64,000 bases of DNA, taken from the NCBI GenBank assembly GCA_964247055.1, contig OZ176050.1, positions 7,936,001 through 8,000,000 on the forward strand, given 5' to 3'. This document shows positions 2,869 to 64,000 of this stretch, in pieces. The DNA comes from Paragordius varius. Lineage: Eukaryota; Animalia; Nematomorpha. The translations under genes and the position numbers were made by a program. Under the pieces are notes generated by a model, which saw only the letters and a list, made by a program, of their open reading frames with translations, made no database searches and was not told where the DNA came from. Within the stretch, counting starts at the first letter, position 1, and every line of letters begins with the position of its first letter.

Positions 2869-4494
2869 TTAAACTTTCCCGTGAAATTTACTCAACTCGT
2901 GGATGTATGTTACAAGCCCCTTCATACCCTTGAGATATAAGTCAAGATTAATATGTTCGTGTTGGGAATGCGCTCCATCCGTAGCATATGAAAGTGGCAT
3001 TAGAATTAGGCTATAATTATGGGGTAAAACATCGGATAAATAAACTGCTGCAGGAACTGTTCCACCATCTCTAGTGATATCAGGTTTCTTCCCAAACACT
3101 TGTTCAATGGCTCGTGTAGCGATTAAATAATGGTGATTATTGGGGTCAGTAATCCAGGACTCTACGTCCTCCTCCAACCATATACGGAAGGTGTTTCCCG
3201 TGTTAAGGGCTTTGTGTAGCTTTTTGGTGAAAAGCATGGTGAAATTTGCAACTTTCTCAATTTTTTGTGATGGAACAAGCCTTATTGAAAATTTGCCAAT
3301 AACCTTATGAGGTATAACAGTTTTTGGACCAGAATCAGAAAAGGCTCCCTCTATCCCATGTATACTGAGTGACGGTTCACGCCACTTGTATTGCAGTGCT
3401 TCCAATTTATTAGAATGTAGCAAATCACCTATAGATCCGATCGAAGTTCGATATTTTTCAATGTTAAAGTTAAATTTTTCATAAGCAAGTTTTTCTTGTT
3501 CAGTGAGAGGCCTAACATCATCATATAAACCCGGGATAAGAATTTCGCCGGTGCTAACATTGGCCAAACTCCCAAGTATATGGATTAATTCCTGAAGCGA
3601 TTCATGAACAGAACCTCCATACACACCCGAATGAAGGTCCTCCTTGGCACTTGTGATTTCCATAAAGAAATAAGCTAGTCCGCGCATACCATAAGTCAGA
3701 CAGGGCGTAAAGGCATTAGGGCAAAAGTTATCTGATATAACAGCGTAATCAATATTGCGGAAAAAATCGGACTCTTGCTTGAAAATACGACGAATTCCAA
3801 ATGAACCGGATTCTTCGGCCGTTTCTAAAAAAAACTTAATTTCAAACGGGATACAAATGTTTAGGTCAATCAAGGCTTTAATCGCATTTATCCAGGATAG
3901 CACTGGTCCTTTGTTATCAGTTATACCTCGACCAAATAAGAGACGGCCCTCTTTGTGTACTGTAAAAGGATCCCAAGGCCACCCATCTGCTGTTGAAGCT
4001 GGAACTACATCAAGATGCCCATAAACAAGTAGTGTGATGTTATTGTTTGGAGAAACTAGGGATGGTGATAGTTTAGAAAATAAAAATGGGGGCCCAAAAA
4101 CGGCGTCATTCAGATGATTGGTGTCATCATGGTGCGAATAACCGTATGCTAAATCTTGTGAAGAAGTGCGTTTACGGAGTGATTTATTCATAAATCGTAT
4201 ATCACTTGTGAAGCCGAGAGCATCTAATTTAGATTTTGTCCATTCAGCTACTCTTATGAGTTCTGGATAAAGACCAATTGATGCTGAAACACTTTTGAAT
4301 GATACCATATCTCGGAGTTCTTGTTCATAAGTTTTTTCATTTTGCTCAATGTGTGAAAATACACGTTGTAACAGTTTATCGTTTAAATTGTGACAATTAT
4401 TATTCGGGGAAAATTTTTGGGTTTTACAAAAGCTTAATTTTAGAGATATCACATAAAAACTTAAAAGAAATAGTATTTTTAATATATTAGCCAT
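2869..4494 (-). CDS. CNDP2-like: CNDP-like M20 metallodipeptidase with N-terminal signal peptide, paralog A (541 aa, intronless)
   Basis: Motifs YGHLDV, GRGITDNKGP, EESGS, ISDN, PCLTYGMRG, DLHSGVYGGSVHE, PSLSIHGIEGAF, KFSIRLVP and DGAHS match the carnosine dipeptidase family. The N-terminus is hydrophobic (MANILKILFLLSFYVISLKLSFC). Confidence 0.93.
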   Translation of the reverse strand: MANILKILFLLSFYVISLKLSFCKTQKFSPNNNCHNLNDKLLQRVFSHIEQNEKTYEQELRDMVSFKSVSASIGLYPELIRVAEWTKSKLDALGFTSDIRFMNKSLRKRTSSQDLAYGYSHHDDTNHLNDAVFGPPFLFSKLSPSLVSPNNNITLLVYGHLDVVPASTADGWPWDPFTVHKEGRLLFGRGITDNKGPVLSWINAIKALIDLNICIPFEIKFFLETAEESGSFGIRRIFKQESDFFRNIDYAVISDNFCPNAFTPCLTYGMRGLAYFFMEITSAKEDLHSGVYGGSVHESLQELIHILGSLANVSTGEILIPGLYDDVRPLTEQEKLAYEKFNFNIEKYRTSIGSIGDLLHSNKLEALQYKWREPSLSIHGIEGAFSDSGPKTVIPHKVIGKFSIRLVPSQKIEKVANFTMLFTKKLHKALNTGNTFRIWLEEDVESWITDPNNHHYLIATRAIEQVFGKKPDITRDGGTVPAAVYLSDVLPHNYSLILMPLSYATDGAHSQHEHINLDLYLKGMKGLVTYIHELSKFHGKV

Positions 4495-5456: not shown

Positions 5457-6390
5457 ATTTTAATACATTAAATGTTTTCACTCAGAACAGTCATGTGAGA
5501 CAACCTGTCTCGCTACAGAACTCTGTCAAGTATTTAGCTTTAAACTTGTACTTTATTGTGTCCATGCATCTCAAAAACTGGCTTTAATGTCACTTATTTA
5601 ATACTTGATGTAGATTAAATAAAATCGGGTGTACGTTTGGATATTGCTATAAACCGGATTGGTGGGTATTTTGTCAAAATTTAGTTTACACTTTTTATGA
5701 AACATTGCAATAAATGAAAGTTTGAAAGAAAAACGGTAAAATCACGGCCAAATATTTGGTTTATAAGTATTAACCATTTTGCGCAAATAATAGAATCATT
5801 CTTATTATATGCCTAAAACCAATACTAGAGGATCAAAAATTTGAAAATAACCGCTTCTTTTACATATGATAAAAATATTTTATCGTTTGGCAGGTATTTA
5901 AGGCGAAATAATTTTTGATATGTAATTTATGTTATTTCCAAAACTTTTTTATCGGCGATTAAAGGTTAAAATGTTTGTTACTTTAACAATTAAGTCGTTT
6001 AAAGCGACATTCGAATCCCTTATAGTATCCTAGGGTAATCAAATCGCCAAATTGAATTTGAGAGTTTATCTCATGATTTTCTAACAAAATAATTCTTTAA
6101 AACAAAGTAAAAAAAAATATACATTTTAATAATTTGATTGTTAAATATATCATTTAATATAACCAACATTTTTAGTATAAGATGAGAACAAACAAGTACA
6201 TGTGAAACATAAGTTTACAAACCTTTTGATTACAAGTGGGCGGAACAAGTTATTATATAATTTTATTTGACACTTAAAAGAGATAAAATATGAGATATAG
6301 TTTCACTTTGATCTAAAACAATATTATAAAACAAAACTTATTGCCCTTTTAATTTTTTCGATTTTGAAATAGTTGTTTCTAAATATAGTT

Positions 6391-7992
6391 ATGGCAAAGA
6401 TCGTATTCTTCTGTCATTTTTTCTTATTATATATTTATGTGAATAACGCAGAATTAACAAGAGACAATTGTATTGATTTGGATGAAACTGCGTTGAAAAA
6501 TTTATTCTCATTTATAGATGACAAAAGTCATTCATATGAACAAGATTTGCGTGATATGGTCGCTTTCAAAAGTGTTTCGGCCTCACCAGAATCTTATCAG
6601 GAACTTATTAAAGTAACTCAATGGACCAAAAACAAACTAGATCAAATTGGTTTCTCAAGTGACATAAAATATTTGGATTGGTCTTTGCGCAAAAAAGATT
6701 CCCGAAACGATATCTTATTTGCCAAACATTTACATCATACCGATGAATTAGGAAACAAAAAATTTGGCCCACCATTTTTGTTCTCAAAATTATCTACTCT
6801 CTCCCAAAAGCGAAAAAATATCTCTCTTCTAGTCTACGGACATTTGGATGTAGTTCCTGCTTCAATGGATGATGGTTGGCCATGGGATCCCTTTAGTGTA
6901 CACAAGGAAGGCAAAATACTTTTTGGCCGAGGCATAACAGATAACAAAGGACCAGTTTTGGCATGGATTAATGCACTGAAAGCGATGAAAGAACTCAACA
7001 TTTGTATCCCGTTTGAAATTAAATTTTTCTTGGAGAATACGGAGGAATCAGGTTCCTTTGGAATCCGTAGAATATTTAAACAAGAATCCGATTTTTTTAA
7101 TAACATCGACTATGCCGTGATTTCAGACAATTTTTGCCCAAATCACAATACGCCATGTTTGACTTATGGGATGCGGGGTTTGGCCTACTTTTTTGTCGAG
7201 ATCATAAGTTCGCGTGAGGATTTACACTCGGGCGTATATGGTGGATCGGTCCATGAATCTATGCAAGAATTAATACATATATTTGCGCGATTAAGTAACG
7301 CTACCACAGGTAATATCCTGATACCAGGAATATATGATGATGTTTCCCCGTTCACGTTGGAGGAATTACAAGCCTATGAAGAATTTGATTTCGACATTGC
7401 AAAATATCGGGATTCTATTGGATTGATTGGTGAACTCTTGCATCCAAACAAGATTGAAGCCCTCCAACACAAATGGCGTCAACCGTCACTAAGTATTCAT
7501 GGGGTTGAGGGGGCATTTTATGGTCAAGGTTCTAAAACGGTCATTCCACACAAAGTAATTGGCAAATTTTCTATACGACTTGTGCCATATCAAAACATAG
7601 AATGGGTAAAAAATCGTACCATAGAATTCGTTTCAAATATTCACCGTGACATGAAAACAGGAAATGCCATTCGTATTCGGTTAGAAGAAGATGCAGAGCC
7701 ATGGATTACTGACCCTAAAAATCATCACTATCGTTTAGCAAGTAAAGCTATCAAACGAGTGTTTGGAGTTAAACCAGATTTAACTCGAGACGGGGGTACT
7801 GTACCAGCCACAGTATACCTGTCAAAAATCCTAAAAAATAATAGTAGTCTAATACTTTTACCACTTTCGCTGGCTTCGGATGGGGCTCACTCAGAACATG
7901 AGCATATTGATATGGATCAATACCTAAAGAATGTCAAAGGAATCGTTTCCTATCTCTATGAATTAAATAAATATCACGACTCGAAGGAATAA
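6391..7992 (+). CDS. CNDP2-like: CNDP-like M20 metallodipeptidase with N-terminal signal peptide, paralog B (intronless; ATG 6391 preferred over the TTG at 6373)
   Basis: Same full motif set as paralog A. N-terminus MAKIVFFCHFFLLYIYVNNA. Transcribed divergently from paralog A. Confidence 0.93.
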   Translation: MAKIVFFCHFFLLYIYVNNAELTRDNCIDLDETALKNLFSFIDDKSHSYEQDLRDMVAFKSVSASPESYQELIKVTQWTKNKLDQIGFSSDIKYLDWSLRKKDSRNDILFAKHLHHTDELGNKKFGPPFLFSKLSTLSQKRKNISLLVYGHLDVVPASMDDGWPWDPFSVHKEGKILFGRGITDNKGPVLAWINALKAMKELNICIPFEIKFFLENTEESGSFGIRRIFKQESDFFNNIDYAVISDNFCPNHNTPCLTYGMRGLAYFFVEIISSREDLHSGVYGGSVHESMQELIHIFARLSNATTGNILIPGIYDDVSPFTLEELQAYEEFDFDIAKYRDSIGLIGELLHPNKIEALQHKWRQPSLSIHGVEGAFYGQGSKTVIPHKVIGKFSIRLVPYQNIEWVKNRTIEFVSNIHRDMKTGNAIRIRLEEDAEPWITDPKNHHYRLASKAIKRVFGVKPDLTRDGGTVPATVYLSKILKNNSSLILLPLSLASDGAHSEHEHIDMDQYLKNVKGIVSYLYELNKYHDSKE

Positions 7993-14100: not shown

Positions 14101-16351
14101 AATTTTTTATGTAAAGAATACTAGTTTATATCTTATAATATGTACACATGATAATATAATTATTAATGATTGTTTAATAAGCGGTGGTCAGTCATCGTTA
14201 TAAAAACATTCAAAACCAGTCAAACTTAACCTTACATAAATATATAAATAATTTTAATTATACTGGAAAGACTTTCGTTCACATTTGGATTATCGGCTTG
14301 AACTGCTTGTTCTTCATCATATAAATTGATGGATTGTTTGATCAAAGATATGCGGTAAAAATAATTTCGCCAAAACTGTTCTTCATTAATTCTAAAATAC
14401 AAAAACACATCTACGGTTATTATTTTAATCATTTAAAACATTATTAAATCGTCATCATCTGTCTCTTAACTGAAATTGTATTAAATGATTTGCTTTAAAC
14501 GAATTTAAAAAATGCTCCAATGAAATAACCCCTTTTCAAAATCTTTCATGTTTCGAAATTTTCCAATTCAGTCTGCAAATGAACAATGGATTAGAGGTCA
14601 CATCCTTTCACCGATTATTTTCAACATTTGCATTGAATGCATCACACGCAACATTGACAAATCGTTAGGAATAAAAATTGCTGGCAGTACAATATTATCA
14701 CTTCATTACGCTGACAACACGATTCTGCTATCTCACTCACTAAACAACCTCATTACTCCTACACAATTAACCTTCGAATGTCAAAAATTTGGTCTAACCA
14801 TCATTTATAAAAACAAAAATCTTGCACATACAATAAATATAATACAATACCTTAACATTCTTGGACACCAAAATCACTGCAGTACCACACTAACAAAGAC
14901 ACCACAGACATTAGGAGAAGAATAGCAATCGGCAAAGCGAATATGATAAAATACAATAAACTATGGTCAGCTCACGGTTTCAAACCTAAAACCAAAATTA
15001 GTCTAGTCAAATCTCTGATCTTCCCAAACTTGGAGGCTAAAGAAGGGAAATGAAAGATATATCTATGCTTTCAAAATGTGGTGTTGGATTAAAATCGCAA
15101 AGTTAAAATAAGAAACACTGATCCTCGATAAAATCAAACCTGAATATCCCAAAACCATGCCTTAAAATGAGCTCTCTTACTTGGGCTATATCACTAGAAC
15201 CAAAAAACTTAAAGTATCAGCTTATGTCGGAAAAAAGATAAAGGTTTTGATAATTTAACTAAGGAATCCAAGCTAACAATGCAACAGTTGATATACATCA
15301 CACCTAATATCACACAAGCTGGCGTAACTACACTCAAGAAATAGCGACAAATCAATCACCAATCTTAGTTATAACAACATACATAATATTGGTTAACATC
15401 AACCTAACACCAAGCCAAAAGACACATTTATAAAGATAGTCCATATTATTTGTTTTTTAATTGTTTTCAAATCGGTGTAATTCGTAAATCATAATTAAAA
15501 TAAAGATGATATATGCTTTTGTATGATAGTTCTGAAAAATATAAAAAGTAAATGAGTGTATTTGGATAAAAACTAATGGAGTAAAACCAATTGGAGATAT
15601 ATGACATAATCCATTGGTTTATGTAGCACTATTCGGAAAATCATGTGCTATAATAAGGCCTAAAACAATTAATATTGAAAAATTTGCTAAATATTTAAAA
15701 GACTTATATGGGACTATGATTAGAAACGAATGTGGTTGGTAAAGTTAATAACCAAAATTTATAGTTATTGGATAATATGATATCTAAATTTTACATAGAG
15801 TATATAGTTTGCCGTTTAAAATTGCATCAATTGAAAGAAAATAATTATACTTTAATGGAACTAATTTGAAACGCATTTTGGATAATTTTGGATCTTCTTT
15901 TAACAAAAATAAGGCATGTGCAGCATTTTCTACCATTTTAAATAAAAAATCGGATCCATCTGGAGGATTTCTTAGAAAATTACGCGAATCCTAAATTTAT
16001 ATATATTGAATAAACATTTGATAAGGCCAAAATTTGCTTTTTTAACAAATCAGGTTTGGTAGAATCTGCCCATATATTGATATTTTCGACTTGTGCAGCA
16101 TTGTTTTTCTGTTGTTCTTTAAAAAAATCGTCTTCAAACTAAAATAAATAATTTCAAACCAAATCATCTAAATTGGTTTTAATAAGTTGTTTTCCTTGCG
16201 AAATTGTGGTTTTCAAAATTTGTGATACCTTATCAAGTGTTGGTACATTTTCGGTTCTGGATTCAAGATCTTTACATTCGGGTTTGGCGCTTTCTTGTAT
16301 ATCATTATATAAATAATAGGCTTTATCCTTTATGGCCGAAAAAAAATTCAT
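8134..16351 (-). CDS. SYAP1: Synapse-associated protein 1 / BSD-domain protein, 6 exons: 16351-16160, 16138-16016, 15990-15851, 14391-14264, 13963-13895, 8252-8134
   Basis: The spliced translation gives KKQILALSN-DSRNFLRNPP...[39 protein letters not shown] (BSD domain) and a C-terminal LKDYEMV...DEWDQELQDML that resembles SYAP1 ends. All splice phases are consistent. Introns are 21, 25, 1459, 300 and 5642 nt. Confidence 0.88.
8855..8990 (+). mobile_element. tRNA-derived SINE copy
   Basis: Box A-like tggtagagtgg (8858-8868) and box B-like agttcgatac (8911-8920). The body tttttcatcat..gtcagccctgg..aggtgggtgt is shared with 52253-52385. Confidence 0.65.
9270..10490. pseudogene. Inverted pair of decayed coding sequences of unknown family (- copy ~9270-9700; + copy ~10030-10490)
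   Basis: Homologous peptides ENAFVVYNNAPIYKALVVYKL / ENAFVVCENAPIYNARVVGKL, FFNREKA / FYHRENA and RAWLHY / RVWLYY, with many third-position differences. Both copies carry stops or frameshifts. Confidence 0.55.
11113..13499. mobile_element. PIF/Harbinger-derived foldback element: two inverted Myb/SANT-gene arms around a nuclease 3' remnant
   Basis: Arms 11113-11997 and 12603-13499 are reverse complements (about 90% identical by eye) and end in gggccaat/attggccc, flanked by AT on both sides. Each arm encodes a frameshifted Myb-like protein (MTEEN.IIVDILEK...QIRKK...K). The spacer encodes PWLLTPF*NTMIDNEEKFNKLHCSERSIIERVFGQMKTRFPIL...ILHN, the C-terminus of a Harbinger DDE nuclease. Confidence 0.88.
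14520..15350 (+). mobile_element. Decayed RTE-clade non-LTR retrotransposon (RT and C-terminus) in SYAP1 intron 3
   Basis: GHILSPIIFNI..E.ITR...GIKIAG...LHYADN; DIRRRIAIGKANM..YNKLW....TKISLVKSLIFP; IYAFKMWCW. Several frameshifts. Confidence 0.85.
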
Positions 16352-52100: not shown

Positions 52101-53151
52101 TTACTGATTTTTTATACCTAGTTAGATCCAACCTTATTAACATGTATATAAAAAGAGTAATTTACACATTAATATTTGTTAATGAATTAATTAATTTTTG
52201 TATATATCATCGAAATTTCTTGTTTATTTATGATAAAATTATTTTAACCAATGCGTGATGGTATAGTAGGTAGGGCGTCGGACTACACTGGGTGCAGTTC
52301 GAACCTCGAAGCTACACAATTTTTTCATCATCACTGTCAGCTCTGGGCAGGCGAGTGTTAAGACCTTCGCATTTCCCGATGCAATTTAAGTCCTTATCCT
52401 TTAATATTAAAAAGGAAAAAAGAGACTCTAAACTGTATATTTTTTTAATAAATTTATCATTAACCCACAAAAAATTTCAATATTTCTATTTCTAGTTATA
52501 ATATGGCCATTAAATTGGATACCCAGCTTTGCAATATGGAGGATGAGTTACGTGATGTCGTTGAACAAATAAATTCTTTGGACGCTTCGAAAAAAACTAA
52601 TAATTTGCTCAATGTGGGTGGTGATCAATTGGATGGCACAGTAGTGAACTCATCTCTTGCAGTATAGTTTTAGCTTATGACATTTTTATTTATTTTTATG
52701 CTTTAAATGTTTGAAATTATTGTAAAGTTTTTGATTTTTCAATTGGTTATTACGTTAAACTTTTTCTGATTTTCCACTTAAATGTTTTATTAACTTTATC
52801 ATTTTGGATAAGTATTTTGACATTTAGCAAAAAGGCCACATATTTTGTTAGTATCAAATACCACATAATAATTAAATGATATACAGCTCTTCAAACATTT
52901 TTTAAAATTATCTTTTTCCATAATTTTTTCAGTATAATTTCACGATTACGCAATGTAAATTGGATATGATGCCGTTTTTTATACTAATTTGCTTTACAAT
53001 TCCGTAAAATTTTTATTATATTTACTAGATTAATCAAATGACCCAAATTTTGGACGCTCATATGGAATTGTTAAAGTGGATTGATAAAAATACCACAAAT
53101 TTGAAAGCTCGTTTGGATGAAATTGCTCTTGATACTAATCCCATTTATTAA
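45445..53151 (+). CDS. NUP62: Nucleoporin p62 (FG repeats plus Nsp1_C coiled coil), about 15 exons
   Basis: MSSGFNFG start with FG/FSF repeats over exons 45445-45478, 45542-45595, 45622-45666, 45689-45760, 45787-45837, 46396-46743, 47402-47563, 48317-48418, 48548-48667, 49032-49283 and 49890-49953. Coiled-coil exons: 50018-50234 (LTYRDLQECMNNWKSEL...NGEK), 51679-51905, 52496-~52661 and 53029-53151 (QILDAHMELLKWID). Confidence 0.93.
49330..49790 (-). mobile_element. Decayed non-LTR (RTE-like) 3' fragment in a NUP62 intron
   Basis: Minus-strand YAAPVILYGTE resembles the P.LLYG.E motif of the RTE C-terminus. GC content is locally higher and there are many stops. Confidence 0.45.
50290..51545. 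mobile_element. Foldback element with ~500-bp inverted arms in NUP62 intron 50235-51678
   Basis: ~50290-50820 aligns with the reverse complement of ~51025-51545 (e.g. attaggtcaaataaaattaa...atagatgaaaacgtgtcaactaaattttatttgttttaat; gaatattagctaaaaaa; tatagaaatt.cccaatatat). Spacer ~200 nt. Confidence 0.8.
52253..52385 (+). mobile_element. tRNA-derived SINE copy in a NUP62 intron
   Basis: Box A-like tggtatagtagg and box B-like gttcgaacc (52297-52305). The body is shared with 8855-8990. Confidence 0.65.
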
Positions 53152-53186: not shown

Positions 53187-56100
53187 TTACGTTTTTTCAT
53201 TTTTTTTCTTGTGGCTTGAAAATATATAATGGAGTCCCAAAAATGGTAACATAAAAAAGAAAAATATATTTAACAAAAAAATTTTAAATTTGCTATATTT
53301 CTCTTCTTGCTTCTTCGGTGATCTATATGCAATTTTAGATAAAAATTTAATTGGATTTTTAGGGATAGAATATAATTCTTTTCTTTTTAAATTTTATAAA
53401 ATGGTGTATATAAATATATATATATACTATTTACAGTTCAAATTCACCCTAAAATAAATTATGTGTTTTCCTATATTTTTTATATTTTTAAGAAAATGAA
53501 ATTTGTTTAAAATTAATATATTACTGAAAAAATAATAAACTATGCCATAAAAATATATTTCATATTAATGATGAGTTATATCAGCCCGAAAAAAGATAAT
53601 TTATTTTAGGGTGAATTTGAAATGTTCAAGGGTGAATTTGGATTAATGGTATATATCTTTAATTTAGAATAATGTAATTTACTTGGTTTTCTCGGGAATC
53701 AACGGTTGTAGGACGAGATCATTATCTATTTGTGGTTCCGTAATTTTTTCTAAAATGGATGATAAGCCCCAAATTCCGATTGGCTTAAAAAATAATCCCA
53801 ATATTGCCTTAATAATTCCTGAATTTATATATAAACAACATTAAAGAGGGTTATAAAGCTACAGTATTCATTATAGCGGTTTATAGGCTTATGAACTTTG
53901 ACTCATGATGTGCATTTATTTTTCACGTTTTAATCTTAAAATTTACAAAGATCATCCAAATCAAATTTTATTAAAAAATAAGTTTAATTTTTTTTCAATC
54001 AGTTAATAAAAGTTTTAGGGATTATTACATACTACTTTATATTTTAACTTGACTACAGAACAACTAAATTTTTGGTTTTCAGAATTTGCTTAATAATTAC
54101 GCTATCAAATTAGAGCAGCGTATGGTAACAAAAAAACAAATTTTTTTCCTATGTTTCAACATTAATCTGCCAATTTAATTATCGACAATTTGTTATGCCA
54201 TACGCTACTGTATATGAAAAATTTAAACATAAATAAATATACCTTTTAACAGTGTCAAACCTATTATCGTTATTAATGCTGCAAGGCCAAACCGGAAAAT
54301 TCCGTCAAACCCGAATGACTTATCAATCACATTTTTTAATTTTGGGTTATTGATGCCCGCAGGGAAAAAAGATTTGTAAGCATTACCAAACGTTTGTGAA
54401 ATGGCTTCTATATAACCACTCTTTGTAATATCCAACAATTCTTTCGTATAGCATGTAAAGAGTTTAGAACTGTTTCCGCACTAATGATATACAGCAAATT
54501 TATGAGTTTACAAATAATAATTAATACTGAGTTTTTTTCAATGGTAAAATTTATTCATTTCGATGTTTATCGTATATGTATAATGTATCTTTTTTAAAAT
54601 ATGTTTAATTAATTAAATATATACCATGCATTTGCATAAGTGTTCGCAGACACATATTTCTCCAATTTTAATCCAGAATGATTTTTGGGATACAACAACG
54701 TTTCCATCCCTAAGGTGGGCTATAATTTTATTTTACTCAATTCATTACCTTTGCAAACGATGTGTTCATTCTTTTTTGCTGTCATATTACAAGATTCATC
54801 AAATTCTATCTCTAAACTTATTCGACGACTTTGTCCTGGGGCAAAAATTTTGTATACGCTTGCATTCCAAGTCAAATTATGAGAACATGAGTTTAAAGTC
54901 AACGTAAGCCCTAATTCCACTATACCTCTGTTTGTTACCGTAAAATGAACGTGAACATTGGTTTCATGGGGTTTTTCAACAATTACGCTTGTAATCAAGG
55001 CTGAATTTCTAAACATTAAATTAATAATTATTTATGATTGGGGTTAACTATTATAAACTAAAGTTTATATAGCTATTACAGATGCAATAACCAAACGCGA
55101 GAAACAGCTGATTATCAAGTTTTAACTAACTCTAAAAGAATATCTTTCTGGATTCATAAATTTTTGTAATAATTTTTAATTTTCCCAAAACCTATAGGGA
55201 TCTAATTATATTAGTTTTATATTCCCTGTTTGTATAAATCAAATCTTATTTTATAATAAACATTAGAAATAATACATAGATTAATGATAAATGGATAATA
55301 GTATTTTTATTGGTCCATTAAAAATTATTTTAATTATGACTATCTCGTTTACCTTATATGGCTAGTGGTGAAAATATCACTAAATATCTGAATCTTCGCG
55401 TGTGTCATAACCGATTTTTGATAGATATACACTAAATAATTGTTCCAAGTTTGATTGGATTTATAAGTCAAATTTTTTCCGTGTGATCCATTATAAAGAC
55501 CATTGAATAAGGGTAGTGATTGATAATTCCCTTTTACCAACATATTAGGATGTAAATATCCTCTTTCGGATATAAAGTTTTTTGAACTATTTTGATTTAG
55601 CTTTTGTTTTGCCTATTTATAACACAATAACTTTAGTTATGAGATGAGAAAGAGGAGTAAAAATTTAAGTATAAATAATAAATTATCTCTGCTTGAGACA
55701 TTTTTTCCTAATTTAGACGTTTAATAAAATGTTATTATGCAATTTATGCTCATTAATATTAGTTTGCCATGGTAGCCTTATCCACATATTTGGATTAATT
55801 ATTTATATTAGAAATTATATTTAAACAAATATTCCGACATATAGTATTCAACATAAAATTTAATTTACCTTTTCCATTGTCCAAATATCCAAAGGTTGAT
55901 TTTGAAAACAGCTGGACAAAATAATTAACTTCATATAGGTTAAAATACATATTTATTATTAACAAATAAATATATTACAGTCAAAGTTTTTTGCTTTATA
56001 AATTATATAGGGTCTTTCCATTAAAAAATTATTTTTGACCAATTCTTTAATCAAAAGTGTATTAAGCCAGCGAAGTTTATATTATAGAATTGACTTCGTT

Positions 56101-59100
56101 AATTAAAAATTCCATCAATTATTAGAAATTGCATTTATTTTACTCAATAATCCATTATTGGTATATTTTATAAATAAAACCCATTAGAACAACGGTTATA
56201 TATCATTAACCGGGAAATCTGAAAAAAACCGTTATGCCCACAGATCAATATTTCTCTCTGATTCTGACTCCGGATTCACTTATTTTATATAGAAATTGTT
56301 CCTAACAAAATGAGTCCGTTCTATGGTTCTTTGGTCAAATAGTTGTGATTTTCATTTTTTTGGAAATTTACAGTCAGTCTTATTATGTTGTTACTACAAT
56401 GTGATAAAAAAGGTTAATTAATTATACTTTTTGTATCAGACAATCTAAAAAATTATAGATTTCAAACAATGTTAATTTTTAAAAAAATAAAAAGCTATTA
56501 TGTGGACCCCGATTTTGGTTCTAAAAACGGTTAAGGAGTCATTTTTGGCTTCAAAACGGATCCAAACGATTCCTCAGTTCCAATGCCTTCCTTGAACATT
56601 TATCTCTGATTTTAATAATCGATTTGGTGGGTAATAGGACTGAGTTTGGATATGAATTCAGTCAAACCGAGATTCTCACGATTAATATGAAAAAATGTCG
56701 ATTTTATATTTATGTATACAAATGCGATTGCTTTAATTCAAATAAGCATCCCCACCGCCTATTATTTTTCCCGTTAAAAAAAGTTTTTCCATTACTTATT
56801 TTGCCCAAAAAAATTTGCTCATCCTGGTTTAATTTACATACCTTTGAGGTTGTAATTCGCATTTTTGGAGCTGATTTTGAAATGCGTGAAACGATACACC
56901 AATTTTGTTACATGACATTCCTGTTCCGTCAAAATCGGATATTGGAATAACAAGTGATCCCTTAATCCCATCCTAATATTTAGTCACTGTAAAATCATGT
57001 AATTCTATTCAGATTGATCAAATTTATGATAAATATGGTAAATTGTTGTATGTCTTCCTGCATAAAACTTATATTTCTTAGATTACTTATAACATAGATG
57101 CCGCCTAAACTTAAAAATGATATGTTAATTGAGGTGTTTGTAATATATACTCGTATTTGTGGGATAGGCATACTCGAATGGCTTAAAGGTAAAGGAATAA
57201 GTACCCTCTCCAAACCGGGTTTTAACGGGAGAACATTATCGTTGGACATTAACACTTGACTGATTTTGAAAGATTTTACCTTCATGTAAAAGATTATGAT
57301 TAGCGAGATACAGTAAAAATTGATTGAAACGGAAAAAACGTAAAAATATTAAGGAAAATATATTTTTTTAAAAGCCGCTCTATTTTTCAAACTTAATTTT
57401 TTACAATATAACATATTGTTTTACAAGGCAAAGTAGAAAATCGAAATATAAATTGGCAACATAATCAATTATATATTTTGAAAGTGAATAAATAATTTAT
57501 ATAGGAACAAATAAAAAGTATAGTTGTCTTTTGAAAAAATATTTGTCTATATATTTTTAAATTTTGTCCGCATAATTTAAGTTTTTACTGTATTTAACTC
57601 AAAATTCAATTTTAGTTCTTACCTTTGTCCCACTATCAGTTTTAACAATGGAAGAATTTGTACTGAATATCAAAGTTTTATTAGCTGTAACGTCAAACCA
57701 AGACGATGGCGTAGTACCATTTTGCATCTTCTTAATGAATACTTTGGCAAAAATATTTTGTTCCAAGAATGGCTCTTGAATATCATACGTGGCATACCTA
57801 GGAGATTAAATATATTATCAGAAAATTTCTTATATGCTCAAAAGGTTACAAAAATATAACACTTAAAGATATACCATTTCCCAGTCTAAATAAACGTTTT
57901 CCCAGTCAATCGAAACATTTTTCCAGTCAATCGAAACGTTTTCCCAGTCAATCGAAACGTTTTCCCAGTCAATCGAAACGTTTTCTCAGTCAATAAAAAC
58001 ATTTTCCCAATCAATCGAAACATTTTCCCAGTCAATAAAAACATTTTCCCAGTCAATCGAAACATTTTTCCAGTCAATAAAAACATTTTCCCAATCAATA
58101 AAAACGGTTTTATTTTTGATGATAAATATCAAACAAGACATAAAATTAACTTTTAACCATTATCAGCGTAATGTTAGGATATTATTTTTCATGAAAAAAC
58201 AATTATTGAATGACAATTTTCACGTATATTCTAATGGACAATCATTAATGACCTATTCTTTAAAAGTTATATTTTTTGTAATTTGAGATGTTTATAAGAT
58301 AATATTTTTTATTTTATTGATGGTTCGCATTATATGCGGCACTTACAAAATCTATAGTTACGGATGAAATATTAAAAATAAAAATCTCAAAGGTCATTTA
58401 ACACTTCATATTGGATCTTAAACATAAATTTTACCCTAATTTTATAATATTTATCATTTGATTCATCGGGTGCCCAACGCGGAGTGCCGAGTATCTTTGT
58501 GCGGCCCACTAAAAATTTAGAAATCCATATGCAAAAATATGCCCACAAAATCTTAGTAATATTCATATTCCTTACGCAATTACTCTGAATGAGTCTATTA
58601 AATTGGTAACAAATTAAAAAAAATTGTTAAATTTTTGTATTTTACAGTCTTATGTCTAATCGAAAAATTATTTATGAAATATATCAAATGCGGAAGACCG
58701 TGCTTTTTGAGTAATGCGGCCCGCGAAGCCATTTGGTTGGACACCCCTGTTTTAGTCAAATCTTATTAAATATTTTTAAAATTATATATTTTTTCCGACA
58801 GTAATTTTATGGAAAAACCTGACATATTTAAAAACTGTTTTGAAGGTTCGGCAAATATTAATGCGAACCATCAATAAAATAAAAAATATCTTATAAATCT
58901 CAAATTACAAAAAATATAACTTTTAAAGAATAAGTCATTAATGAGTGTCCATTGGAATATACTTGGAATTGTCATTCAATAATTGTTTTTTCATGAAAAA
59001 TAATATCCTAATATTACGCTGATAATGGTTAAAAGTTAATTTTATGTCTTGTTTTGATATTTATCATCAAAAATAAAACCGTTTTTATTGACTGGGAAAA

Positions 59101-61522
59101 CGTTTTTATTGATTGGGAAAATGTTTTTATTGACAGGGAAAACGTTTTTATTGATTGGGAAAATGTTTTTATTGACAGGGAAAATGTTTCGATTGACTGG
59201 GAAAACGTTTCGATTGACTGGTAAAACGTTTCGATTGATTGGGAAAATGTTTCGATTGACTGGGAAAATGTTTCGATTGACTGGAAAAATGTTTCGATTG
59301 ACTGGGAAAACGTTTATTTAGACTGGGAAATGGTATATCTTTAACATGGGTTAAACCCTTAGAAAATTATAGTAATAACCTGCACAATTTTAAGTCCTTC
59401 ATTATGTTTTAGCTAATTTGTAAAAAAGAAAATTTGGTTTTTTTATGGAATCCATTTAAAAATATTAATAGTTATATGCTAAATAATTATCCGACTAATC
59501 AGATTTCGTTTAATGTTTTTAAGTTAAACTGTTGCGTTCTAACGATAAAATACGTAATGATTTTTTTCCAAAAGTCATAATATTTACCATAAATCGTTGT
59601 AAAACATACAGTGAGCACTTGTACTATATTTAATTTCATCGCCGCTGTCCTCATAATACATTTGATTTTTGGAAGCTTCACAATTGCGATTTCCTCTGAC
59701 ATTGAATAATTGATCCGGTTTCTGACATCCACAACAATATCCCTTTTGATATCAGAACAGGATATAATTATAATTTTCTAACATATGATTTCCACACTTT
59801 AACTCAAGTATAAATAATTTAAAATAGTTTACTTAATTGCAATTATATACTATTTATAATTTTATATTATAACAGGTATAATATCGATTCTTTAAACCCA
59901 TTATTCATACCCAACTTTCCACATACCTTTTTTTTCATCCAAATTTTTGATTCACTACGAAATAATTTTAAATAATTGTTTTTATGTATAATTATTATCA
60001 TAATAATAATAAATTTATGTTAAATTAATCAAAATCCTATCTTTTAAAATTTATAAAATTCATAACATTGCATCCATGCTTAATGAGTGAATTAAAACAA
60101 ATCAATCAAACACCTGACTGTCGGGTATAATGTGTCCGTCATCATACTGATAACCACATGTGGGTTGATCGCCTTGACTCACGCATCCACTATAATTTAA
60201 GGAATTATCTTTGTGAAGCACATATTCACGCGGTTTACTATTAACATTCTGTCAAAAAATAATTCATCAGTAATATACATTCAAAAAATGTTAAATTGTG
60301 TATCCGCGGCCGTAGAAGTGCTTTGTAGCCCAGATTTATTTATAATGGTTTTTTATTAATTTTGAGTATAAATATACGAAAATGTGCCAAACAGCTATGA
60401 ACTTTTTATCGGTATTAACAAGCCCTTGATAATAAATTTTATTTGTGACTGACTCTTTAAATTTGTTCCTGAGCACTACTGATGTATATGATTTTATAAT
60501 TCGTTAAATTTGAATAAAAACATATTAGTAAAACTCACATAGAGATAGTTTAAGGGATAAACGATGCGGGTCGGTTCAATAACTAGCCTTAAAATAATGG
60601 GTGTTAACAGAAGTACTATACGATTCATAGCTTTATCAAACACATGTCTTATCTTGGCATATTGAGTGATTGTTTCTGTCTAAAAAGGTAGAGTTTTGAT
60701 TAAATAATTTATATGTTTTCTTCAAATATATTGAAAAATTCATATATTAATTTAGGAATAATAATGATGATACAACTCTAAAATTTCTAATGGGACATCA
60801 TCTAAGCGTTAAGCCTTTTTAATAAAAAATTTTTATTCCTCGTTCAATTAATATTTGATTGGGCTAGCACGTATTGTAATATAACCTATGAAATGGCAAT
60901 CGACCACGGTTTTAGGTTAATTAATAAATGAAATAATAAAAGTGATTTTGTATTCTTTGGAGGAGAAAAGGATGAAAAGATGCCTATATTTGATTTAAAA
61001 AATAATCTCAAAAACCAGAGAAAAACCCTACATGCCTTTGTTCTCTGCAAAACTTACCCTATTCCCTTTTTTAAGGCCTAATGCCATACGTATAAAATTT
61101 AACCAATAATTGAAAAAAGCTTTATGATATAAAAAATTGAATTTTACAACAAAATATATATCAATTTTATAGTCTATAATTATAACCTTATTTAGCAAAA
61201 ATTAACAAAACATTTTATATTATATGTGTTTTGAACTTATAAAAACATACAGTAGGTCCTGGATTATGATAAAATATTTCAATTTCAATGTCCAAATTTT
61301 TGGAACAAGGTTGGGATGATTGGTGACGTAACTCTTGGAGCAATCTGTTTTTTTGATAAAATGTCGTTTTTTCTGACAAAATTTTGTATAAAAATTTTCT
61401 TTGGAGTGCTTCGTAATCCATATTCTTTTGACTACTCAAATTATGATAATTCGAGATCGACCGGCATTCGTGTAATATTGCTTTGGTATAAATGTTTACA
61501 GATGACATAACAATAGAATATT
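53187..61522 (-). CDS. HAP2: HAP2/GCS1 class II gamete fusogen; at least 14 exons (~768 codons), signal-peptide exon not located
   Basis: Exons 61522-61251, 60679-60539, 60248-60114, 59742-59588, 57797-57623, 57279-57151, 56972-56842, 55911-55869, 55612-55353, 55008-54749, 54719-54625, 54480-54243, 53818-53683 and 53322-53187 join in frame with GT-AG ends. Motifs: VYPLNYLYNVNSKPRE; PTCG...IPDSQGYCCGC...VRG..NC...SAHCMFYNDLWYATYDI; GMSCNKIGVSFHAFQNQ..KC....SCFQNQP; an Ig-like domain (VTNRG, LNSCS); CVCEHLCKCMC; and C-terminal hydrophobic segments. Confidence 0.92.
57886..58098. repeat. 21-bp tandem repeat array (~10 units, consensus TTTTCCCAGTCAATCGAAACA) in the left arm
   Basis: Directly visible; it produces the spurious (LTGKMFR)n ORF. 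Confidence 0.92.
58464..58749. mobile_element. hAT-type MITE (CAGGGGTGTCCAAC family) nested in the foldback spacer
   Basis: Right TIR gttggacacccctg (58736-58749), degenerate left end catcgggtgcccaac, and gcggccc subterminal motifs. Confidence 0.65.
59088..59321. repeat. 21-bp tandem repeat array (~11 units, inverted) in the right arm
   Basis: Reverse complement of the 57886-58098 array. Confidence 0.92.
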
Positions 61523-62405
61523 CTACAATTTTTGTAATTTTAATTAATCCAGGCTTTGTTCCATCACAATAAGCCCATCAACAAGTATAATATTCTAATC
61601 CACAAACTTATCTACGGAAGTCAATTACTGCTTTTTTATCCAATAATTGCGTTGATATTGCCTTATTAATTATTAATTTTATAAAAAAATATTTTCGCCA
61701 TTTTTGCAAAACAGAATTAAACCTAGAAGAACACGCTTCTTGTATTTTAAATGGTTGATATCATATTTAAATCCACATTGTACAAACTTAAAATGTAGGA
61801 CTCTAAATGCGCCATCTGAAGGGCTTCTTAAGTCTTGAAACTCATGTAGAAAAAAACCACCACCAAATTAGTTTTCTAATGGGTGGTTCGCAAATTAGAA
61901 CACGAACCAGGTTAGTTCCCTTTTATACCTCGCTCCTGTTGAGATGTAAGATAGATGACTACCTTTTTACTAGTCATTAACTGCTACTTTTATCTGACTT
62001 GCGCTTACGTAATTTGTTGTTATTTATTTAAACATAAAATATTAATTTGATAAAACTAACTCATGTTAAATTATGTCTATTTTGTTGGCACCAAACAAAT
62101 TTTTTAAATCAATTGAAAATAATAGGAATTATCATTATACACTAAATAACTTATCAGTTTAACTATTAGTAAAACATTGTGCAAAAAATATCAAAACGTA
62201 TTTTATCCCAAAAAGAGATAAAAATTGGCGATCACACATAAATAGTCTGCGCATAAAGGCGTTTTATTGTAAACTGCTATGGTTGCTAATAAATTTATTA
62301 ATATATAGAACTTAAATGCTTTTTGTATGACAATACATCACAGATGGGGAATAGTTAATAATTTTGCTTAATTTAAAGTATATGTATACATTTTCCAATT
62401 AAAAA

Positions 62406-64000
62406 TTATTTTCTCCATTTTTTATATGTGATATTGGGACTAGTAGTTTGATTAATTGTTGTTTCAGGTGTTATCCTTTTTCGGCTCATTACATTGTTAG
62501 TTGGTGCTTCAATAATGTTGGACTTGCAAACTTTGTCCTTTTCACTTTCTAAAACGTTTTTTTCCACATTGAGCGATTCTTGCATTGTTGCCTTTCGAAT
62601 TTGTCCCATATCCCCAGTGGAGGAACATGAAATCGGTAAATTCTCCCTGTTTAAGTTTTTATTTAATGGCGAGGAATCAAAATTTTGTGGAGCAAATGGA
62701 ATTGAATTGCCCATATTTTGCAGAGTATGCAAGTATAATAGCGATTGTTCTACATTTGGCTGTATGGTGTTGGGTACTGTCGAAAAACTTGATAACGGGG
62801 TTCGTAGAGCAGGGTTCGATAATTGAGATAATGTTTGTTGGGCTGCGTGATTTTTCAAGAAATTTGCATACATTTGATTAAAAAAATGGTGGGCCATCTG
62901 TCCTTTAGGGTCTGCATTGATTATATTTTCATTATTTTTTAGTGATGAAGTTGACTCCTGACTTCTGTCGTAAAATTGTGGATTAGAAGATGACAACGTA
63001 GTTGGGATAGGAGGAGGCCTTGTTGATAATGAAGGATTATTTTTGCTAAGCATGTTAATAATAACATCTAAACTAGGTTGACTTTCAGCCACTTGTTCTG
63101 ACATTGATAACTGATTTTTAGGGTTTGTAATTAGAGGCGGCTTCCTTGATATGTCAGAGCTTGTTTTAGGTGCAATATAATTTTCCGAAGGAAGAGTATG
63201 CGATGGAAAACATGTATTTTGTTTTGCAGAGTATTCATCCAACTTTCTATTCCACTGATTGGTGTTTGTAGCCGAGGCCAGAAGCATAGCATGGTGCTGT
63301 TGTTGATATGCGGCAGCTGCAGCCATCAAAGAATTGTAATAATATAACATGGGCGCTGTTTGAGGAGGCGGTACAAAAGATGTCCCATACCCGCCGACCG
63401 ATGGAATGTGTGGAAAAGTTGGATTGATTGCAGATTTCGCTGGTGGTTGTATCATAGTTTCAGCCACATTAGGCGATGAAAACATCTGAGCATAGGTTGA
63501 TAACCACGGGTTCATCATAGGTATGGAGGGGACTGTTGGTGGTCCCATAAAGGGATTACTTGCGCACATCAATGGCCCATAATGCATGTAGTATAGGTAA
63601 TAATCAAAAAGCTCTCGTGGAAGATTTTTGTATAAGCGAGGGGAAGTGGTAGACGAATCGCTACTAGGACGAGGAGGGCCCGATCCTTTGACATCAGAGC
63701 CAGACGAAGTCACTGTTTGATGTCCACAAACGTATTTATCTATAAAAGATGGCTTTGATGTATCTTTTAATGGCAGATGTCCCATATTGTTTATAGATGG
63801 TTCTCTCTGTGACATAGAAACAGTACTGGTTTTAAAATGTGATATTGTTTTAATATTCGATTTCGGCCATTCCAATTTATCAGTGACTTTTAAAGCGGAC
63901 GAACAAGGAGGATTAAGCGTCGATGTGACTAAATCAAAGTCCATATTATGTAGCTTTAATGAATTTAACCACTTTTGTCTCCTTACAGATGAGGCATAAC
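62406..64000 (-). CDS. Terminal part of a low-complexity Ser/Pro/Gln/Ala-rich protein, probably a nuclear regulator; 5' end lies outside the window
   Basis: The frame stays open upstream of the track's Met to the window edge (..YASSVRRQKWLNSLKLHNMDFDL..). Contains AAAAYQQQHH, Pro/Met/Tyr-rich tracts and basic SRKR and KKWRK near the end. No recognisable domain. Confidence 0.75.
   Translation of the reverse strand, partial: YASSVRRQKWLNSLKLHNMDFDLVTSTLNPPCSSALKVTDKLEWPKSNIKTISHFKTSTVSMSQREPSINNMGHLPLKDTSKPSFIDKYVCGHQTVTSSGSDVKGSGPPRPSSDSSTTSPRLYKNLPRELFDYYLYYMHYGPLMCASNPFMGPPTVPSIPMMNPWLSTYAQMFSSPNVAETMIQPPAKSAINPTFPHIPSVGGYGTSFVPPPQTAPMLYYYNSLMAAAAAYQQQHHAMLLASATNTNQWNRKLDEYSAKQNTCFPSHTLPSENYIAPKTSSDISRKPPLITNPKNQLSMSEQVAESQPSLDVIINMLSKNNPSLSTRPPPIPTTLSSSNPQFYDRSQESTSSLKNNENIINADPKGQMAHHFFNQMYANFLKNHAAQQTLSQLSNPALRTPLSSFSTVPNTIQPNVEQSLLYLHTLQNMGNSIPFAPQNFDSSPLNKNLNRENLPISCSSTGDMGQIRKATMQESLNVEKNVLESEKDKVCKSNIIEAPTNNVMSRKRITPETTINQTTSPNITYKKWRK

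Follow-up and report, generated by a model that had tools for sequence, protein, structure and literature searches.

Gene model and coding evidence

The window analysed here is a stretch of 64,000 nucleotides (nt) from the horsehair worm Paragordius varius (Nematomorpha), contig OZ176050.1, positions 7,936,001 to 8,000,000 of the forward strand. It is AT-rich eukaryotic DNA (21-35% guanine plus cytosine, GC, across 2-kb bins), and on its minus strand, from about 61.5 to 53.7 kb, a run of short open stretches makes up a gene for HAP2/GCS1. To our knowledge, HAP2 is the sole gamete fusogen common to eukaryotic kingdoms, and only a minority of bilaterians have kept it. How is such a gene read from a chain of short pieces? 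The open stretches of the minus strand were read base by base, the exons were joined by script, and phase and stop codons were checked. The resulting model has 13 exons (61508-53679, minus strand) in consistent phase, giving 719 codons with a single, terminal TAA. Its 12 introns, from 29 to 1790 nt in size, all run GT...AG and are phase-compatible. The exons and one intron of special interest are as follows (a slash marks a splice junction).

61251-61508, minus strand: exon 1 as modelled; ATG at 61508, donor ACT/gtatgt; codon log-odds +0.13 and +0.18
60539-60679, minus strand: exon 2; 47 codons with phase 0 at both ends; strands of domain I; acceptor ttttag/ACA, donor TAT/gtgagt
60114-60248, minus strand: exon 3; NSKPRE and PTCG motif; Pfam PF10699, 27.0 bits
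59588-59742, minus strand: exon 4; GYCCGC, fusion-loop region, R-GNRN-C and SAHC; ends in phase 2; Pfam, 22.2 bits
57623-57797, minus strand: exon 5; 1 + 58 codons, the first base finishing a TGG codon; acceptor ctcctag/G, donor AAG/gtaaga; within the P0003 alignment (see below)
57151-57279, minus strand: exon 6; 43 codons; weak collinear tblastn match to locus L001; within the P0003 alignment
56842-56972, minus strand: exon 7; HAP2-GCS1 signature CNKIGVSFHAFQNQ..C, with the Gln corresponding to Q379 of Chlamydomonas; Pfam, 39.4 bits
55869-55911, minus strand: exon 8; 43 nt; finishes a Ser codon to give SCFQNQP, the junction residue and motif agreeing with P0003 (NSCLKNQ)
55353-55612, minus strand: exon 9; 86 codons + 2 nt; weak collinear tblastn match to L001; no Pfam match alone
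54749-55008, minus strand: exon 10; 1 + 86 codons + 1 nt; presumed domain III
54720-54748, minus strand: micro-intron between exons 10 and 11; 29 nt, GT-AG; the frame depends on its removal
54625-54719, minus strand: exon 11; the Cys-rich stem begins, CVCEHLCKCM
54243-54480, minus strand: exon 12; remainder of the stem and transmembrane segment GIFRFGLAALITIIGLTLL
53679-53818, minus strand: exon 13; second hydrophobic stretch, short tail, TAA stop at 53681-53679; codon score +0.14

The gene thus comprises at least 13 minus-strand exons, and in its product of about 700-720 residues a full ectodomain is followed by a Cys-rich stem and then by one clear transmembrane segment, after which the tail is short. 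Base composition and codon usage both follow the model. Every exon lies above its introns in GC (0.30-0.40 in exons against 0.17-0.27 in the flanking introns; exon 2, for example, has 0.35 against 0.24-0.27 in the adjoining introns), and the in-frame codon log-odds score, trained on five long intron-free open frames of the window against the HAP2 introns, is positive in 13 of 13 exons, ranging from +0.11 to +0.37. Other ways of joining the pieces were tried: a 106-nt intron within exon 9 breaks the frame and was ruled out, and alternative acceptors for exons 6 and 10 were ruled out by phase.

A preliminary description of this DNA had proposed a chain of 14 exons (61522 to 53187), which reads as claimed: 2306 nt and 768 codons, the only stop being terminal, with 12 of the 13 introns re-derived independently, all GT/AG and with phase kept. 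It differs from the 13-exon model at the ends alone, starting at the acceptor at 61522 and reading through past the stop at 53679 into 53322-53187. Because both chains stay open and in phase, the observation is real and well beyond chance. The motifs quoted in that description are all present on the minus strand as well: NSKPRE, PTCG...SQ/GYCCGC over an intron, QKPDQLFNVRGNRNCEASKNQMYYED...SAHC, CNKIGVSFHAFQNQLQKCELQPQ/SCFQNQP, also split by an intron, and CVCEHLCKCM/C, together with the C-terminal hydrophobic segments.

Membership of the HAP2/GCS1 family

For the Pfam, PDB and database searches the exons were taken singly. The Pfam family HAP2-GCS1 (PF10699) is a profile of 515 positions with a curated cut-off of 27.4 bits, and in an exon-by-exon search exons 3, 4 and 7 match it in collinear order, at profile positions 66-116, 114-157 and 253-290, respectively. 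Exon 7 alone passes the cut-off (39.4 against 27.4 bits), exon 3 falling at 27.0 and exon 4 at 22.2 bits. Exon 7 also matches the HAP2 ectodomain chains 7s0k, 5ow4, 5ow3 and 5mf1 of the PDB; no HAP2 chain there was matched by the sequence of exon 3, 4 or 10. The family identity proposed at the outset is therefore backed by Pfam, by the PDB structures of HAP2, by a metagenomic HAP2 homologue and by conserved functional residues, the last two of which are described below. Membership of the family is a direct observation for three exons, as are the gene structure, the open frame, the key residues and the host taxon.

Is the rest of the ectodomain there? The spacing of the profile offers an answer. 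Model residues 68-594 (527 amino acids) are close in length to the 515-position profile. The last 19 or so codons of exon 1 (C-SKNLDIEIEI...) form the start of the Pfam-covered ectodomain, and the 66 profile positions before exon 3 correspond to this end of exon 1 plus exon 2 (19 + 47 residues). The roughly 225 positions after exon 7 correspond to exons 8-11 (220 residues). The spacing fits, and the ectodomain lacks no large portion.

Functional residues, stem and membrane anchor

According to Fedry et al. (2017, PMC5332557), both fusion and liposome binding by Chlamydomonas HAP2 require a positive charge at R185. In the same paper, conservation within the fusion-loop segment is confined to R185 and C190, and R185 forms a pair with E126 and also touches Q379 in the signature segment, E126 and Q379 both being strictly conserved. 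The worm model has a counterpart for each of them, the correspondence being by motif and spacing rather than by full alignment: KPRE in exon 3 for E126, R-GNRN-C in exon 4 for R185 and C190, with equal spacing, and AFQNQ in exon 7 for Q379. Exon 4, which carries the loop region, is bordered by introns 3 and 4.

The model contains 21 cysteines, including those of GYCCGC, NC, AHC, SCNK, KC and SC and those of the stem, CVCEHLCKCMC; the conserved cysteine pattern of the ectodomain and a Cys-rich stem are thus both found. It also contains 13 N-glycosylation sequons. The transmembrane segment in exon 12 is clear, with a Kyte-Doolittle mean of up to 2.2 over 19 residues, and in exon 13 a second hydrophobic stretch, broken by Lys and Pro, is followed by a 23-residue tail.

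A metagenomic relative and the origin of the gene

When the signature exon (47 residues) was run against the whole library with HMMER, a sole true relative emerged, protein P0003, encoded on two short Joint Genome Institute (JGI) metagenome contigs (locus L001) and scoring 148 bits on PF10699. Two further matches, an FN3/SLH protein and a HEAT-repeat protein, were rejected as false and driven by repeats. With 27% GC, in-frame TAA/TAG codons and a 22-nt intron, the L001 contig probably comes from a ciliate-like host. Searched exon by exon with tblastn, L001 matches exons 1 (8e-4), 3 (1e-5), 4 (6e-6) and 7 (3e-12), and weakly exons 6 and 9, so that it is collinear with worm exons 1, 3, 4, 6, 7 and 9. 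In exon 1 the match, at query residues 28-78, falls on the N-terminal end of the L001 protein. Aligned locally to P0003, the spliced model matches over its residues 189-394 with a score of 172, against 37 +/- 5.6 for shuffled sequences; identity is 33% across 168 aligned positions and 47% in the signature exon. The alignment also confirms junctions 4/5 and 7/8, and with the latter the place where intron 7 divides a Ser codon.

There are differences as well. L001 is almost intron-free, whereas the worm gene has 12 introns. The first cysteine (NRC) of the N-terminal pair of L001 is replaced by Leu in the worm model. The signal peptide of L001 lies immediately before the first conserved block (aligned to exon 1 residues ~53-78), where worm exon 1 has about 65 extra residues. 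Of note, the 22-nt GT-AG intron of L001 (1028-1049, gtaatttatttttctaaaaaag) lies directly after the NQ..DFHK block, near the position of worm intron 8.

Could the gene then be foreign DNA, either a contaminant of the assembly or a recent transfer from a protist? The sole significant HAP2 match in the library is indeed ciliate-like, on AT-rich metagenome contigs with a 22-nt intron and in-frame TAA/TAG codons, but with 33% identity over 168 aligned positions P0003 is a distant sequence, and its appearance reflects how few relatives a query of 47 residues can pick up, not close kinship. The gene, moreover, lies between animal genes on one contig, has the same base composition as they do and carries 12 spliceosomal introns. 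A neighbouring gene, an intron-free M20 dipeptidase at 2869-4494, encodes a protein to which three Gordionus sp. m RMFG-2023 proteins match at 58, 57 and 55% identity, the other animals listed being at about 40%; judged by sequence, this neighbour supports placing the window in Nematomorpha. The search gave no self hit, so the genome is not represented in the protein collection and is not that of this Gordionus species. Contamination or recent transfer is very unlikely because the gene sits among neighbours of the same base composition on one contig. The locus is, with good probability, the HAP2/GCS1 orthologue of a horsehair worm.

The two ends of the gene

The preliminary description had called the gene apparently intact. 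This stands for the ectodomain, the stem and the transmembrane segment, which have no stops or frameshifts and canonical splice sites; it does not extend to the 5' end, where no signal peptide is found, nor to the 14th exon, which is doubtful. The features in question are these.

62164-62254, minus strand: candidate upstream exon; start codon and signal-peptide-like core MRRLF...YVLIFFAQC
53187-53322, minus strand: 14th exon of the preliminary description; phase-compatible and stop-free; needs a donor AA/gtaaat that overlaps the stop codon

At the 5' end, the frame of exon 1 is free of stops up to 61577, and AG acceptors allow the exon to start at 61553, 61522, 61480 or 61372. A further 5' exon is likely, because the frame stays open to 61577 and the coding score persists upstream of the ATG. 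Within 1.1 kb upstream, 62254-62162 is the sole ATG frame with a hydrophobic core, and its donor at 62163 (phase 1) fits the acceptors for exon starts at 61522, 61480 and 61372. On this evidence, 62164-62254 is a candidate for the signal-peptide exon. The acceptor ttgtag/ that gives the start at 61522 lies 14 nt upstream of the sole in-frame ATG of exon 1 (61509-61522), with the end of the upstream gene at a distance of less than 1 kb. The arrangement at 61509-61522 resembles what an operon-like layout using a trans-spliced leader might produce.

At the 3' end, the 14th exon has an intron-like GC of 23.5% and a codon log-odds of -0.075, like that of open stretches within introns, and its stop would sit only 36 nt away from the place, 53151, where a convergent open frame of the plus strand terminates. 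It is probably non-coding because of this composition, the negative codon score and the closeness of its stop to the convergent frame, and that it is a real exon seems doubtful. An AATAAA at 53605-53600, 74 nt past the stop at 53679, is weak evidence in AT-rich DNA.

Several results weigh against a complete and functional HAP2. After 61508, the sole in-frame ATG of exon 1, the sequence is hydrophilic and contains no signal peptide, and the candidate upstream exon has a weak donor (gttaaa) and a codon score of -0.14. Of the type I topology, the anchor in exon 12 is clear and the signal peptide appears only as this weak upstream candidate. Exons 1, 2, 5, 6 and 9-13 have no Pfam match of their own, and exon 8, with its 14 residues, falls below a length that can be scanned; the absent matches are unsurprising for pieces of 30-86 residues in a family that is poorly conserved outside its signature. 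The library-wide HMMER search with the 47-residue exon 7 returned one true HAP2 only, and no nematomorph or other animal orthologue. Exon 10, the presumed domain III, was also modelled: its single-sequence AlphaFold2 (AF2) structure is all-beta and of low confidence (predicted local distance difference test, pLDDT, 60.7). Foldseek found nothing significant with this model, and VIA-align returned generic beta-sandwiches at Z of about 5 (best 5.6), with residues 391-468 of A. thaliana HAP2 at rank 28 (Z 4.4). These predicted-fold matches are compatible with domain III and do not discriminate. A word search with the domain III piece gave no match.

Do these results point to a relic, a HAP2 whose ectodomain frame is still open but whose start and signal-peptide exon, or whose expression, has been lost? 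Such decay would fit the missing signal peptide behind the sole in-frame ATG of exon 1, the poor donor and the non-coding-like score of the candidate upstream exon, and the repeated HAP2 losses that Steele and Dana (2009) describe for bilaterians and arthropods. It fits poorly with 719 stop-free codons in DNA of about 27% GC, where intronic stop-free stretches rarely exceed 60-90 codons, with splice dinucleotides intact at 24 of 24 sites, and with the retention of the critical Glu, Arg and Gln and of the cysteine pattern. Signal-peptide exons are, in addition, short and compositionally odd, and overlooking one from DNA alone is to be expected. A decaying gene is therefore unlikely.

Comparison with known HAP2 proteins

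The HAP2 proteins of Chlamydomonas reinhardtii, Arabidopsis thaliana, Trypanosoma cruzi and Cyanidioschyzon merolae (5mf1, 5ow3, 5ow4 and 7s0k) share with the worm protein the signature CxKIGVxxxAFxxQxxxC. Further points in common are the Glu of KPxE, a cd-loop region in which an Arg precedes a Cys by five residues, the CCxC motif, the sequence in which the conserved blocks follow one another, the overall length of the ectodomain and the C-terminal membrane anchor. Pairwise similarity between these solved chains and the worm protein is detectable in exon 7 only, exons 3, 4 and 10 having been searched too. The fusion-loop segment of the worm has a sequence of its own (LF...MYY), as expected of a hypervariable region, and the tail after the membrane segments is short.

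Among animals, HAP2 is found in Hydra, Nematostella, Amphimedon and arthropods (Apis, Tribolium, Pediculus), and the worm gene is likewise metazoan and multi-exon. The arthropod proteins, which are divergent, and the worm protein both belong to ecdysozoans, a group with patchy HAP2, although to different phyla. Fusion loop 1 of Tribolium has a 66-residue insertion (Fedry 2018), whereas no large insertion is evident in the worm. Losses of HAP2 have recurred among bilaterians and arthropods; the arthropod genes were called divergent, and no expression data were found for them (Steele and Dana 2009). Annelid HAP2 sequences have been mentioned (Fedry et al. 2018), and reviews place HAP2 in "some invertebrates". 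A literature search that covered few subscription journals found no paper pairing HAP2 with Nematomorpha or "horsehair worm".

A possible role in sperm-egg fusion

What would such a protein do in a horsehair worm? The gene is a new member of a known family, and by analogy its function would be like that of every other HAP2. The mechanism proposed here follows the HAP2 of Chlamydomonas, Arabidopsis, Plasmodium and cnidarians. The worm HAP2 would be displayed on the surface of the male gamete as a class II fusogen, the loops encoded by exon 4 would enter the egg membrane, the protein would trimerise, and domain III and the stem would fold back, with the membranes merging as a result. A class II fold, a true start with a signal peptide, expression in the testis and fusogenic activity are features that we infer, and use of the protein in sperm-egg fusion is likewise suggested by its relatives.

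The protein could instead be genuine and expressed but serve another role, such as somatic cell fusion. The nematode fusexins EFF-1 and AFF-1 (FF fusexins) are class II-like exoplasmic fusogens of the same structural superfamily, in the sister phylum, so somatic fusexins exist close by, and no bilaterian HAP2 is known to have a demonstrated role. EFF-1 and AFF-1 differ, however, in forming a separate family without the HAP2-GCS1 signature and in acting in somatic rather than gamete fusion. All HAP2 proteins with functional or expression data act in gametes, and nothing in the worm sequence hints at another role. A somatic or other function is thus unlikely.

Nematomorpha is usually seen as the sister phylum of Nematoda. 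As far as we know, C. elegans is without HAP2, and we know of no gamete fusogen from its genetics, in which many sperm-egg proteins have been found. It is about an even call whether horsehair worms keep a working sperm HAP2 that C. elegans is without. If they do, they would be the nearest relatives of nematodes to carry HAP2, and the nematode loss would fall after the split. If HAP2 is retained in Nematomorpha, the loss in nematodes must be later than the split from Nematomorpha. The argument from the pattern of loss gains substance from the nematomorph host. An apparently complete nematomorph HAP2 adds a second ecdysozoan phylum besides arthropods and brackets the nematode loss; if the proposal is true, it also offers a natural comparison for what replaced HAP2 in nematode gamete fusion. 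Which fusogen is used by bilaterians without HAP2 is a long-standing question.

The structure of the gene has a more practical side. At least 13 small exons and a 29-nt intron may be split or missed by standard gene finders, so HAP2 could be under-reported in genomes of this kind, and published "absences" of HAP2 merit a second look. The micro-intron lies in the 3' third of the gene, away from its start.

Neighbouring genes and minor observations

The HAP2 gene is flanked by the convergent plus-strand frame that ends at 53151 and, upstream, by a 512-codon open frame on the same strand. Further features of the window are these.

2869-4494, minus strand: M20 dipeptidase (CNDP-like), intron-free, with a signal-peptide-like N-terminus
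6373-7992, plus strand: M20 dipeptidase paralogue, divergently oriented, intron-free, likewise with a signal-peptide-like N-terminus
14548-14925, plus strand: 125-codon fragment with a weak RVT_1 (reverse-transcriptase) match
62406-63944, minus strand: 512-codon open frame, rich in Pro, Ser and Gln
57863-59344, no strand: foldback-type repeat in intron 4; inverted arms, each about 470 nt long, with a centre of about 526 nt between them; not HAP2 coding

For the two M20 paralogues of the window, the three Gordionus proteins are the closest relatives, at 55-58% identity. In Gordionus (locus L003) two copies of the M20 dipeptidase gene stand in tandem on the same strand. This locus was tried as a route to a HAP2 orthologue and set aside: gene order differs, and there is no usable single-exon gene near its edge. 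The stop of the 512-codon frame lies about 150 nt from the candidate start exon of HAP2. The frame matches no Pfam family, has no relative by word search and no record by exact look-up, and a larger gene that extends beyond the window may have it as its last exon. Rfam gave no match over 52-64 kb. The sequence CAGCTG occurs in 4 copies in the whole window, against 2.5 expected, and one of them straddles the acceptor of exon 8 (55909-55914).

The arms of the foldback in intron 4 are 85-100% complementary, and each carries 10-12 tandem copies of a 21-bp unit, TTTCCCAGTCAATCGAAACAT, that occurs nowhere else in the window. The fragment at 14548-14925 is probably the remnant of a retroelement.

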